A DNA stretch of 64,000 bases from Salpingoeca rosetta (GCA_033442325.1 JAWQFM010000002.1:2135349-2199348), one strand, 5' to 3'. Positions 50,737 to 61,466 are shown, numbered from the stretch's first letter. A program made the numbers and translations. Notes: generated by a model from the sequence alone, not told the origin.

Positions 50737-53700
50737 ATGATGCGCAAGCGAAGGCGTGCGCGAAGAAGAGGTGGTGGTGGTTGCAACGTGCTTCCCAACA
50801 TGCACCTGGCTGCAGTGACCGCGTCACGCACACCCTCAGCGAGGAAAGCCTTCGCCACGCAACTGTCCAGAGCACTGCATGTGATGTGGATGCTCATTGT
50901 GGCTGTTTTACTGCTCAGCACAACCCCAGCACAAGCGTCGCTGTTTGAAACTTGCAACGTCCAAGACCAAAGTACTTCAGATGTGTATGCTCGGTGTCAT
51001 TTGTCTGTTTGTTCCGTTGGCGTCTGTCGTGCTTGCTATGTTGGTTATACTGTTTACGGTGGGCTCCCTATGTTCACACTCATTCCCACACACTTGTTCC
51101 ACATGTGTTCGTGCACACACACACACACACACGCACACACGCACACATGCTCACACACACACACGCGCGCACACACACATACATATCTTGATTGCAGCTG
51201 GGTGTGCGTGCTCAGAAGCACGGACGGACTGTTTGAACGACCCAGGATGTGCGGCTGCCATCAAAGATGACAGCAGCGTACCAACTGGGGACTCCAGAAC
51301 GCTCTTCGGCATCTTTGTCGACGCCTGCTGTGACGGCTGCCCCGCAAACTACAACGACCGCGTCGATGTCATTCAAGGTAAAGATGGATGGGTTGGCGCG
51401 CGAACGTACAGAGATGTGATCATGACGTGGTGACGACGACGCATGCACATGACATGCTCGACGCAGCACCAGTCGCGTCCTCTCGACATCGCGTGCACAC
51501 GTCTGTGTGGTTGTTCGCTCGTTTCTGTATGCATTTGTGTGTGTGTGTATGCATTTGTGTGTGTGTGTGTGTGTGTGCATTGGTTTGTATGCCACTCATT
51601 CGCGTGCTGCTTCCTTGCGTACTTTGCTTGTATGTGCTTGGATGGACGGCAACAGAGCAAGGGAACACACGGTGCACGAGCAACTGTGGCATACAAACTG
51701 TGGACTGCGTCAAGACAACAACATGCTACGCCACAGCGGCCCATCTGCTTGGCCGCACCGACAGCATTGATGTCCTGACAAACGTCACCAGCGCCTCCGA
51801 CGCCGCGCTCAGTGAGTACCATAACTTGGAGTGCTGTATCGTTTGGAGCATCATGCCAAGTGTTGTGTTGCGCCTGCTGACAGAGCGCCGGCGAAAGTCG
51901 TAGTTGTAAACTTTGCATGACAGTGTGCCAAAACAATCACACGCATGCGCGCGAACTCACGCCCATGCACACAACGCTCTCACACGCGCACGCACATGCA
52001 AACGCACCCGCGCGCAGTTTCGGAGATGTACTGGTGCCAGCAAGTCGAGTGCCGGACGTGCGAGACGCAGCGCAAGTGCACAGCAGTCAGCCTCGCCTGT
52101 GAGCCTGCACAGACGCAAGCAGAATGCGTCGACTGGGGCTGCACATGGGATGGCGGAATGAACTTCTGCCTGCCTCCCAACCCAACAACATGCAGCACGC
52201 TTGACGAGTCTTCATGCGAAACAAACGCCCAGTGCACGCTGGTGTCGGCTTGTCTGCTTGAACAGTGCCAGTGCGACACGCGCCCCTTTGAAGCGGGCGC
52301 AACGTACGGGCTGTACCTTTGCTCCTCCTTTGGCAACACGTCATTCACAGGAGCAGACCTCACGTGCGGCGACACAACTGCGGAGCTCACGCCAGGCGCC
52401 GTCACCATTGAAAGCGACGGCCTTGTTCGCTTCGATATTGCCCACGCCGATCCAGACACGCTGCACGCATTCTACTTCAGGCGCTCAGACATTGCAGGTC
52501 AGCACATGTGCTTGGCAGCTGAATGCGTGTGTGTGTGTGTGTGTGTGTGTGTGTGTGTGTGTGTGTGTGTGTGTGCGTGCGTGTGTCTCCGTGTGTGTGT
52601 GTGTGTGTGTGTCTGTGTGCGTACGCATGCAAGCGTGCCTGTATATCCATCTATCCATCTGTATATGCGCAAGCGTGTCGTATCTCGTGTGTGCTCCCAG
52701 CGCTGTCCACTTCCGCATCTCACCCTCCACCACCACCACCACCACCACCACCACCACCACCACCACCACCACTAGATGCTGAACTGCTGGGCCAAGCGGT
52801 GACGGATAGCAGAGGGATGTTCATGTCCATCACGATTTACGACGCCAACCGCCCCATTGACCTTGATCCCCGCACAACGACCGTCAGCCCCGTCCGTCTG
52901 TCCGACACCACAGACGGCCAGCTCTTCGTCTACTCCCGCGGCCGCTACAGGTGCGCGCTGGATGTGTAGTTTTGTGTGTGTGATGTGTAGTTTTGTGTGT
53001 GTGTGTGTGTGTGTGTGTGTGTGTGTGTGTGTGTGTGTGTGTGTGTATGTATGTGTGTGTGTGTGTTCGTGTTCATGTGTGTGCGTATATTATGTCCTTG
53101 TTCATGTGTAAATGGTTTTGCCCTTTTTGTGTATGTGTGTGTGTGAATGTGAATGTGATAGTGATAGTGATAGTGATAGTGATTGTATGGCTGTGGATCT
53201 GACCGCTGGCGCGTCTGTTTCCGTGCAATGAACACAACTCCCTTATGACTCACAATCATTCTCACCGTTTCGTCCTCTGCACCATTTGAACTCGCCCCCC
53301 TCTACATGTCCACTCGACTAGAATGTCAGCTGGTCGTTTCCGTCGAAGTGGTGGCGGTGGTGGTGGTGGCGGCGGTGGCGGCGGTGGCACGTATTGCTAC
53401 AACACAGACACGGCCATCAACTATGGAACGCCAGAGTGCTCTGGGGGAGAGGACGGGCAGTTCCTCAACGCAGAGGTGTCCCCCGCGTCATCCGATGTGC
53501 TGCTCATCAGCTGCGACATTGATGGCCGCGCGTGCTACACCGTTAACAGCGATGATGACGATGATGCCAGTGGCAGTGACATGAACAACAACAGCACCGC
53601 CAGCGGGAACCACACCGTCTTTGACAGCGTGTGCTTCAATCAGACCGCTGAGGCAGAGTGCGTCATGCACCCAGAGTGTCGGTGGGGTTCATGCCATGTC

Positions 53701-59700: not shown

Positions 59701-61466
59701 ATGGCCATGTGAGTGGTGTCGGTGGTGTCGGTGGTGCCGGTGGCAACAGTGCATCAAGCGAGGATGTGCTGCGGCAATGGACAGATGAGGTGGTGGCTCA
59801 GGCCATGCAGCCCCAGTCTGGGCGCAGCAGCCTGTCGCGGACGTCAGCGAAACAGCGCACACCGCTGTCTGCCGTCTTTGGGCCCACCTCGACGCAGCGG
59901 TCGCACTCCTCCCCGTCATCTGCACCGGTGGCGTCGTCGCCTGCGTTTCTGCTGCCGCCGTCCATCTCGCCGGCGTCCTCAACCTCGGGCCTGGCACGGA
60001 CCATCACGGACGCAAAGTCGCCCACAAGCAGCGCCGGCAGGCGGCGGAAGCGCTCGATGGACACGGCGGTGCCCACGACGCTGCTGCGGCACCCGGCCGA
60101 CCTCAGGGACGAGCTGGGACGCACGCCGCTCATGTTTGCCGCCAACTGCGGGCAGGCGGCGTGCGTGGAGGTGCTGTTGGAGGTGGGCGCGCAGCCAGAC
60201 GCCGTGGACACGAGCGAGCGCACGCCCCTGCACCACGCGTGCCTTGGCGGCGGGGATGTTGACGCGGACGGAGTCATTGGGCGGCTGTGCGCGGCGTCGC
60301 CTGAGACGGCATCGCGGCTGGACGTGAATGGCCAGTCGCCACAGCACGCAGCGTGCCTGGTTGGAAACACGCGCGCGCTCGAGGCCATGTGGCGAAACGG
60401 CGCCGAGGTGGATGTGCAGGACGACGGCGGGGCAACGCTGCTGCACGTGGCCGTGCGCCGCGAAGACGTTGTGGTGATGCACAGCGTGATTGCGGCGGCC
60501 GCACACGCCATGGGCTCCAGCGATGCCCTGGTGAACTTTGTTGACGAGGCAGGCAACACGCCGCTGCACTGGGCGGCGCAGCTTGACTGGCAGGACGGCG
60601 TGGAGGCACTCCTGCAGCACGGTGCACAGGTGACGCACGCCAACAAGCGCGGGCTGACGGCGCTGCATCTTGCTGTTCGCGAAGGCAGCGCGCGCGCCGT
60701 TGAAACGCTGCTGTGCTCGTCTGAGGTGCACGTGCGGCAAATCAGGCAGACACTGGACACGCCGGTTCCCTCGGGCGAAACGGTGCTGGCGTTTGCGCAG
60801 CGCGTCAGTGTGGACGAGGTGGTGGCGCTGCTCGTGCGTGTTGCGGACGAGCATGACACGACGTTTGGGCTGTCGGACGGCGAGTGGGAACAGCTGCGCG
60901 CGGCTGTAGGCCCAGCGCCCAACACCCACGCCAGCAGCAGCGGTGCTGGTGGTGGGCACGGCAGCGTCAGTGGCAATGCAGCCAGCCCAACCTCCTCTGA
61001 CAAGAGCGCACAGAGCAATCGCACGGGCAAGTCGCTGTCAAGCGGTGTGCCCGCGATCTCTCCGCGCAGCAACGCCAGCAACAGCGAGAGTTCCACCACA
61101 GGCACCAGCACCGCCACGAACGGCAGTGGGCAAAGGGGAAAGCCAGGTGCTGCAAAGAATGGTGGAAACCGCAGCCGGGGAAGCAACACCAGTCGTGGTC
61201 GTGGTCGTGGCCGTAATGGCGACGATGGTGATGCTGGTAATGGTGGCGATGGTGGTCAGAGCAAGCGACGCACGCGCGTGTGGACAGAGGAGCGCCGGGA
61301 GAAGAACAAGCGGGACTGCCGCCTCCGCCGCCAGCGCAAGAAAGAGGAGCAAGCGCGCCTGGAGCAGCGTGTGAAAGGTCTGGAGAACGAGCACGTAGTT
61401 GTGTCTTCCATTCTCGAGAAACTGCGAGCTGAACGTGACGCCTTGCTGGAACACGCGGCCACATGA
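50737..61466 (+). CDS. About 2,900-aa type I membrane receptor: Cys-rich/mucin/IPT-like ectodomain, SEA-like domain, TM, Notch-like ankyrin repeats, C-terminal bZIP
   Basis: Eight GT-AG exons, all in phase: 50737-50971, 51198-51377, 51656-51811, 52018-52497, 52776-52950, 53322-55324, 55676-57538, 57805-61466 (8754 nt, 2917 aa; alternative start 50884). Signal peptide MWMLIVAVLLLSTTPAQA. TM VGAGVGVFVALVLLVALMV then KRRKQQKRR. Ankyrin repeats at about 59469 and 60108-60835. bZIP at 61263-61463. Confidence 0.88.
55411..55552. repeat. (GCTT)n tetranucleotide microsatellite in intron 6 of the receptor gene
   Basis: Directly visible tract. Confidence 0.95.

Follow-up and report, generated by a model that had tools for sequence, protein, structure and literature searches.

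Transcription factors of the basic leucine zipper (bZIP) type that are tethered to membranes are known as type II sensors of endoplasmic reticulum (ER) stress. In the ATF6/CREB3 class, the bZIP is located N-terminal to the transmembrane (TM) segment and the luminal sensor is short; regulated proteolysis, in which S1P and S2P cut in the Golgi, is the known activation logic of these proteins. Nrf1 is anchored by a signal segment at its N-terminus, lacks an ectodomain, and undergoes retrotranslocation and cleavage by DDI2. Notch, for its part, depends on another protein to bind DNA. Ankyrin (ANK) repeats occur in p100/p105, where they keep the DNA-binding part covered until the protein is processed, and in GABP-beta, which combines them with a C-terminal leucine-zipper-like dimeriser. 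Here we describe a gene of the choanoflagellate Salpingoeca rosetta, located on the + strand at 50737-61466 of a 64,000-nt stretch of DNA (GCA_033442325.1 JAWQFM010000002.1:2135349-2199348; "the window", to which all positions given without a contig refer). It encodes a predicted type I membrane protein with an ANK array and a C-terminal bZIP of its own.

A surface-type receptor with such a tail would represent a new wiring of membrane-to-nucleus signalling. The assembly of animal signalling pathways is reconstructed with the help of choanoflagellates, and S. rosetta is genetically tractable. A first-pass annotation of the window had proposed a Notch-like receptor carrying a bZIP, and knew of no described protein with this architecture. 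No account of a type I protein combining TM, ANK and bZIP was found in the searchable literature either.

Gene structure and transcription

The architecture of the gene was confirmed as real, expressed and conserved in a sister species. TM anchor and bZIP are part of the same polypeptide and the same mRNA, and both are kept in P0123, a 1,953-aa EukProt protein of Barroeca monosierra, which is described as a close relative of S. rosetta (PMC11389367). The gene model is based on three long open frames of the + strand (53323-55344, 55345-57690 and 57636-61466) in a GC-rich region (55-65% GC). These frames are linked by phase 1 GT..AG introns with donors after 55324 and 57538 and acceptors before 55676 and 57805. 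Enumeration of GT/AG combinations upstream of them resulted in in-phase models of eight exons, about 2,900-2,930 aa in length and with zero internal stops, of which the one with the best consensus comprises 2,917 aa. Two splice sites are ambiguous, namely the donor of exon 1 (50971 or 50995) and the acceptor of exon 3 (51656 or 51662). The elements of the best-consensus model are the following.

50737..50971, + strand: exon 1; start codon, long basic N-region and hydrophobic signal segment (aa 42-65, about 50860-50931), from sequence, in-phase model and hydropathy
51198..51377, + strand: exon 2; Cys-rich ectodomain, with tblastn match of P0123 aa 56-113 to 51203-51376; donor AAG/GTAAAG
51656..51811, + strand: exon 3; ectodomain, from the in-phase model, without Pfam match
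52018..52497, + strand: exon 4; Cys-rich ectodomain, from the in-phase model and P0123 aa 173-335 on 51990-52478
52776..52950, + strand: exon 5; ectodomain, from the in-phase model, without Pfam match
53322..55324, + strand: exon 6; large Cys-rich ectodomain exon, from the open frame and P0123 aa 406-668 and 847-906; donor ATG/GTGAGT
55676..57538, + strand: exon 7; poly-Thr, two beta-sandwich-like modules and first half of the membrane-proximal domain (about 57394-57538), from the open frame and RNA
57539..57804, + strand: intron 7; GT..AG (GT at 57539, AG at 57803-57804), phase 1, containing a (GT)n microsatellite, supported by RNA
57805..61466, + strand: exon 8; second half of the membrane-proximal domain, TM, tail, ANK, bZIP and stop codon (61464-61466), from the open frame and RNA
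57972-58028, + strand: predicted TM helix (hydropathy 2.82, weak Pfam TM_ErbB1 match, equivalent in P0123), with the stop-transfer sequence KRRKQQKRRH at 58029-58058
59385..59550, + strand: conserved island with a WYI motif and a detached first ANK repeat, from tblastn with P0123 aa 1438-1489 (E 4.5e-7) and the three-way alignment
60090..60920, + strand: ankyrin array of about six canonical repeats plus a degenerate capping repeat and helix, from Pfam and AlphaFold2 (AF2; pLDDT >90); 39% identity to P0123
60921..61262, + strand: disordered Ser/Gly/Arg-rich linker between ANK and bZIP (about 115 residues; AF2 pLDDT <40), of variable length in the alignment
61263..61463, + strand: bZIP with basic region and five-heptad zipper, from Pfam, profile matches, hhalign and the AF2 helix (model residues 413-470)

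Transcription was checked on 57300-61500, with read placement skipping the repeats at 57542-57639 and 58295-58336. In the stranded 2026 RNA run X20, the depth is 4-50 across 57300-57581 and 57723-61500 and zero at 57582-57722, within intron 7. First mates are nearly all on the minus strand, which means + strand RNA in most stranded libraries. Exon 8 is covered continuously and no joints were observed within it. Two assembled RNA contigs come from separate studies: record 8 of X4 (5,575 nt) places on 57300-57537 and then contiguously on 57804-61500, and record 11 of X8 is spliced at the same intron and reaches 59598. Both show the join 57537/57804 and continue upstream. A further dataset, X1, behaves as DNA. 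Because of the X20 coverage, the empty intron and the spliced contigs, exon 7 with its part of the ectodomain and the unspliced exon 8 with TM, ANK and bZIP share one + strand mRNA.

These results agree with the first-pass annotation in its main structural points. It had predicted an in-phase gene of eight exons, which is reflected by the stop-free 2,917-aa model. It had also placed TM, ankyrins and bZIP in one uninterrupted exon, arguing that the fusion is no artefact, and the continuous RNA corresponds well to this. It had named transcripts that splice out the TM or the bZIP as a possible refutation; in the RNA data examined, no joints fall within exon 8.

Two side observations concern the transcribed sequence. 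The X4 contig lacks 24 nt at 59569 (59545-59620 of the window), in frame and within a tandem NSSYRGSR duplication of the disordered tail; this difference is either a strain length polymorphism or an assembly collapse. Microsatellites of the types (GT)n/(CA)n, (CCA)n or (GCTT)n are found in every intron and in the 3' flank of the gene, and several of them keep the frame open and thus inflate mechanical ORF lists.

51100-51180, 51520-51580, 52525-52615, 52720-52775, 52975-53070, 55340-55555, 57551-57628 and 61513-61582: microsatellite tracts

The C-terminal bZIP module

The bZIP comprises the last ~67 residues of the protein, about 1,070-1,100 aa C-terminal to the TM. Its spacing is N-x7-R and R-x9-L, followed by L/L/V/L/L heptads, and the basic motif and the heptads had already been pointed out in the first-pass annotation. 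In the three-way alignment of the family members it is the best-conserved part of the tail: 11 residues of the basic region are invariant in the three sequences (W, T, R, K, N, C, R, R, R, R and K), and the zipper keeps an invariant Leu at four of the five heptad positions and V or L at the remaining one. A family profile of these three sequences gave CREB (E 5e-4) and c-Fos (6e-4) as top matches in the PDB, with the signature Asn and Arg in register. Likewise, hhalign against seven canonical bZIPs from the genome's own Pfam matches resulted in an in-register alignment with 93% probability (E 3e-7). AF2, run on the region from ANK to the end with a three-sequence alignment, predicts one continuous bZIP helix of 58 residues (pLDDT 90-96).

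The Pfam model bZIP_1 has a cut-off of 27.6 bits. The isolated S. rosetta domain scores 28.4 bits, and 28.7 bits in a six-frame search of the genome. Such a test of the C-terminal segment by bZIP models had been proposed in advance, and its outcome is divided, as the isolated domain exceeds the cut-off whereas the score in the whole-exon context (24.9 bits) and those of the relatives are below it. From the profile and structure comparisons, we read this module as a genuine but divergent bZIP of the CREB/ATF-like type, with a DNA specificity that is not predictable.

Membrane topology and ectodomain

Only two hydrophobic segments were detected in the whole protein: aa 42-65, the putative signal, which is followed by AQA/S, and aa 1756-1775, the putative TM. 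The basic flank directly after the TM has seven basic residues out of ten. The ectodomain of ~1,750 aa contains 105 Cys and 23 N-x-S/T sequons, and the tail after the TM, ~1,140 aa in length and mostly disordered, contains 8 Cys and 10 sequons. As judged from hydropathy and composition, the large domain is outside and the tail cytoplasmic, irrespective of whether aa 42-65 are cleaved off as a signal or serve as an N-in anchor. The signal peptide, the ectodomain of ~1,700 aa and the single TM with a basic stop-transfer proposed by the first-pass annotation are all recovered in this topology.

Pfam was run at E up to 1 on the products of all eight exons and at E up to 0.1 on full-length P0123. 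At E up to 1, the ectodomain exons matched no Pfam family. For the beta-sandwich-like modules of exon 7, a language-model Atlas points to IPT/TIG with a score of 0.85, which is under the trust level and makes this a lead only. A module of ~100 aa encoded at ~56020-56440 in exon 7 is common to a giant open frame of contig 15. There, on the - strand of C15:1137600-1166300, an 8,051-aa stop-free frame and its neighbours carry at least nine copies of the module (E down to 7e-10).

The ~90 residues preceding the TM are conserved between S. rosetta and B. monosierra and form a membrane-proximal domain, for which a beta-alpha-beta-beta-alpha-beta order is predicted in B. monosierra (pLDDT 75-94). Foldseek gave no match to this domain at E 0.001 or better. 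In VIA-align, SorCS2 came first with its membrane-proximal domain region (Z 8.4); the juxtamembrane domain of Trop2 (Z 6.3), many RRMs and ACT were also found. On the basis of the predicted model, the domain can be placed in the compact ferredoxin-like alpha/beta fold class, with no finer assignment. A SEA or Notch-HD identity was not adopted, since the matches are only generic ferredoxin-like ones. The sequence GSVVV (57394-57408) resembles a SEA autocleavage site and was rejected as such: it is located on strand beta1 and not in the beta2-beta3 turn, and it is absent from B. monosierra. The beta2-beta3 turn itself contains a conserved RR pair (GRGRR/E in S. rosetta, GKGLRR/S in B. monosierra), with which the position of intron 7 coincides exactly. 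We regard this pair as a candidate convertase site and nothing beyond.

Ankyrin repeats and the relation to Notch

Pfam detects ANK in the last exon with E 4e-33. About 190 aa upstream of the array lies the detached first repeat, a feature noticed in the first-pass annotation that is conserved in all three family members. The ankyrins had been described there as specifically Notch-like, and this did not hold. A phmmer search of the PDB, both with the whole array and with the two-repeat segment quoted for this claim, gave ankyrin-1/2, DARPins, NOMPC and TRPA1 as best matches, and Notch chains were absent from the best 60 of >400 PDB matches. The ANK part of NF-kappaB p100 is among the PDB matches to the array. 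By structure (Foldseek), Notch1 ANK is found at rank 43 among equivalent generic ANK matches with the same 21-31% identity. A word-indexed protein search with the ANK-bZIP part delivered generic ANK proteins of the ANKRD28/44 type, and none of its matches carried a bZIP family. The closest ANK match within the genome is C17:1297964-1298395 (+ strand, E 1.9e-11), which lies in an open frame of 1,980 aa.

For choanoflagellates, Notch has been defined by the domains EGF, LNR, TM and ANK in that order (Richter et al., PMC6040629). The window gene has a TM (aa 1756-1775) followed by a cytoplasmic ANK array, with 6-7 repeats in the AF2 model. Neither EGF nor LNR (PF00066) was detected by Pfam in any of the eight exons or in P0123. 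The same LNR model detects loci of the genome itself, at C8:1985834-1985935 (+ strand, 49.5 bits, in a 1,789-aa frame) and, more weakly, on C12; these LNR proteins are unrelated to the window gene. By every available test, the gene is not a member of the Notch family, because EGF and LNR are lacking and the ANK repeats are nearer to generic ankyrins and DARPins, so that the identity as a Notch-like receptor had to be given up. The resemblance is one of layout and not of descent.

Relatives and distribution

An exhaustive phmmer search with the post-ANK region and the bZIP against 1.84 billion representatives revealed two related clusters and no more. In the first cluster, P0123 of B. monosierra combines a signal segment with a Cys-rich ectodomain of ~1,300 aa; its TM is flanked by KRK and followed by the detached ANK repeat, the array and, at the C-terminus, the bZIP. 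It is collinear with the window from 51203 to 61445, that is from exon 2 through the bZIP, and in a global alignment of 1,915 columns it is 32% identical to the 2,917-aa model, the two having 90 Cys in common. P0121, which belongs to the same B. monosierra cluster, comes from a separate 5.7-kb contig, where TM, ANK and bZIP follow one another without interruption within an ORF of 695 aa. The second cluster (P0122/P0127) originates from a metagenome; here the gene is cut at the 5' end of the contig and ends with detached repeat, ANK array, linker and bZIP. Word-indexed searches with the ectodomain and the C-terminus of the ortholog returned no matches, and the length filter and index limits make these blanks weak.

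Within the S. rosetta genome, the bZIP region alone gave only weak matches. No TM-ANK-bZIP arrangement was present in the long open frames inspected around the weak own-genome and Pfam bZIP matches, the ANK matches on contigs 17 and 7 being outside this scope. With the family bZIP profile, one weak relative was found on contig 24 (E 9e-5, mostly over the zipper).

C24, about 1141000-1145200, + strand: second gene; signal peptide, poly-Thr stalk and TM in one frame, disordered tail, ANK and basic coiled coil in the next

The poly-Thr stalk of this gene has ~70 residues and its TM carries a basic flank. Its ANK array is collinear with that of the window gene at ~30% identity, a value at which homology beyond generic ANK is not established, and its C-terminal helix lacks the signature bZIP Asn. 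Judged by these sequence features, the layout recurs in the genome, and the window gene is the only copy with a near-canonical bZIP.

Next to the gene, a convergent ORF of 592 aa on the - strand (62061-63839) encodes a putative 2OG-Fe(II) oxygenase domain (PF13759, E 3.7e-17).

Proposed mechanism and alternative explanations

We read the gene as a lineage-restricted choanoflagellate membrane-tethered bZIP factor with receptor topology, whose tail would be released by proteolysis; the chances that this is right or wrong seem to us evenly balanced. A signal at the ectodomain would lead to proteolysis. Shedding could take place near the membrane-proximal domain, perhaps after a convertase cut at the dibasic hairpin, and could be followed by intramembrane cleavage of the presenilin type; alternatively, the protein might be cleaved within its disordered tail. 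The freed ANK-bZIP fragment would enter the nucleus by means of its basic region, dimerise through the zipper and bind a non-canonical bZIP site. The ANK array might recruit partners, or mask the basic region until release. Since a presenilin (five exon-wise matches covering the model) and three kexin/furin-type P domains are encoded in the genome, the machinery for a Notch-style cleavage cascade exists, which concerns feasibility only.

A bolder version, which we put forward tentatively and hold to be somewhat doubtful, is that of a self-contained receptor-transcription factor. In response to an extracellular cue, a type I receptor would be shed in the manner of Notch and cut by presenilin, and the freed tail would act as a sequence-specific bZIP with an ANK platform for cofactors. 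If true, this would be an independent one-protein route from the surface to the DNA in the closest relatives of animals. Together with the contig-24 gene, the window gene may then belong to a small family of such receptors. The conserved non-canonical basic region, with Asp/Tyr-Cys in place of Ala-Ala, would predict a new bZIP DNA specificity.

Several observations weigh against the tethered bZIP factor. Proteolytic release with nuclear entry and DNA binding is a mechanism that we only infer. Support by RNA had been called for at all exon junctions; that of the last intron was confirmed, and junctions 1-6, which lie outside the RNA range examined, are supported by GT/AG consensus and the collinearity of B. 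monosierra, not by reads. For the membrane-proximal domain, VIA-align gave only generic ferredoxin-like matches (Z at most 8.4), and the RR site in B. monosierra departs from the strict furin consensus. The bZIPs of B. monosierra (16.9-19.6 bits) and of the metagenome (15 bits) are under the Pfam cut-offs. In the basic region, whose canonical signature is N-x2-(A/S)-A-x2-(C/S)-R with Leu heptads starting nine residues after the Arg, the canonical DNA-contact Ala pair is replaced by Asp or Tyr and an invariant Cys, and the usual Cys/Ser by Arg; with these replacements, DNA binding is not to be taken for granted. The homodimer prediction for the bZIP reached a score of 0.09, which speaks neither for nor against dimerisation. 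Finally, the family extends over two species and one environmental fragment.

The replaced alanines, the low scores of the ortholog bZIPs and the conjectural nature of the cleavage would also suit a resident membrane receptor or an adhesion or scaffold protein that never becomes nuclear. Here, the ANK repeats would dock cytoskeletal or signalling partners, and the basic coiled coil would only dimerise or bind acidic lipids. The contig-24 gene points in the same direction, as its signal peptide-stalk-TM-ANK arrangement ends in a basic coiled coil without the invariant Asn. We consider this explanation unlikely, though worth serious attention. However, no stretch of the tail is better conserved than the basic region, whose 11 invariants include the Asn and Arg at N-x7-R spacing. 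A helix for dimerisation only would not need the in-register alignment with CREB/Fos and the genome's own bZIPs.

A further explanation assumes an internal promoter or an alternative start in the last exon, from which a soluble ANK-bZIP or bZIP-only factor would arise without proteolysis, the membrane form having a separate role. The RNA depth rises about five-fold toward the 3' end (~10 at 58000 vs 45-50 at 61100-61500), and read starts cluster at 60747 and 60815. However, the rise fits an ordinary 3' bias, the clustered starts represent few molecules (11 and 5), and the RNA contigs are continuous from exon 7 to the 3' end. We therefore hold this possibility to be improbable.

That the gene is a true but highly divergent Notch homolog with an acquired bZIP could be argued from the type I topology, the ~seven ANK repeats that follow a long disordered juxtamembrane tail, and an alpha/beta domain next to the membrane that contains a dibasic site and loosely recalls the HD/S1 region of Notch. 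However, neither EGF nor LNR is present in the gene or its ortholog although the LNR model does find other loci of the genome, the ANK repeats tend to generic ankyrins and DARPins, and the order EGF, LNR, TM and ANK (PMC6040629) is not found, which leaves this idea very hard to credit. Least credible is a gene-model artefact joining a secreted Cys-rich gene and an ANK-bZIP gene, which the read-free junctions 1-6 might suggest and which is largely refuted, as exons 7 and 8 are joined in spliced RNA contigs, the TM shares its exon with the ANK-bZIP, and the whole locus has a collinear counterpart in a single B. monosierra protein.

Comparison with known systems

With Notch of animals and the Notch-like protein of Mylnosiga fluctuans, the window gene shares the type I topology, the long disordered segment from TM to ANK, the ~seven ANK repeats, an extracellular alpha/beta domain adjacent to the membrane and the presumed proteolytic release of the inner part. 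In contrast to Notch, it is without EGF, LNR and NOD, and its ANK repeats are no nearer to those of Notch than to other ANK proteins. A RAM-type WxP motif was not seen in the window gene. As it possesses its own bZIP, a partner of the CSL type would not be required.

The ATF6/CREB3 (OASIS) proteins and plant bZIP17/28/60 likewise have a bZIP tethered by one TM and a CREB/ATF-like basic region (KNR..RE.R.KKE). As the first-pass annotation had stressed, the layout of the window gene is unlike that of ATF6/CREB3: the large domain, ~1,750 aa behind a signal peptide, precedes the TM, the bZIP follows at the extreme C-terminus, and ANK repeats are present, which is not the type II topology. NFE2L1 (Nrf1) also has its TM N-terminal to a C-terminal bZIP, but this bZIP is of the CNC type and ANK repeats are lacking. 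NF-kappaB p100/p105 and GABP-beta combine ANK with a DNA-binding or zipper module on one polypeptide; they differ in being soluble, with no membrane anchor, in their domain order, and in that their own DNA-binding domain is a Rel homology domain or is absent.

The gene on contig 24 shares signal peptide, TM with basic flank, disordered tail, ANK and C-terminal basic coiled coil with the window gene; it differs by the short poly-Thr stalk as ectodomain and by the helix without the invariant Asn. If the proposed mechanism is true, the window gene is built from parts, namely ANK repeats, regulated proteolysis and a bZIP, that animals split between Notch/CSL and ATF6/CREB3. It would work as a hybrid of Notch and ATF6 without being a member of either family.

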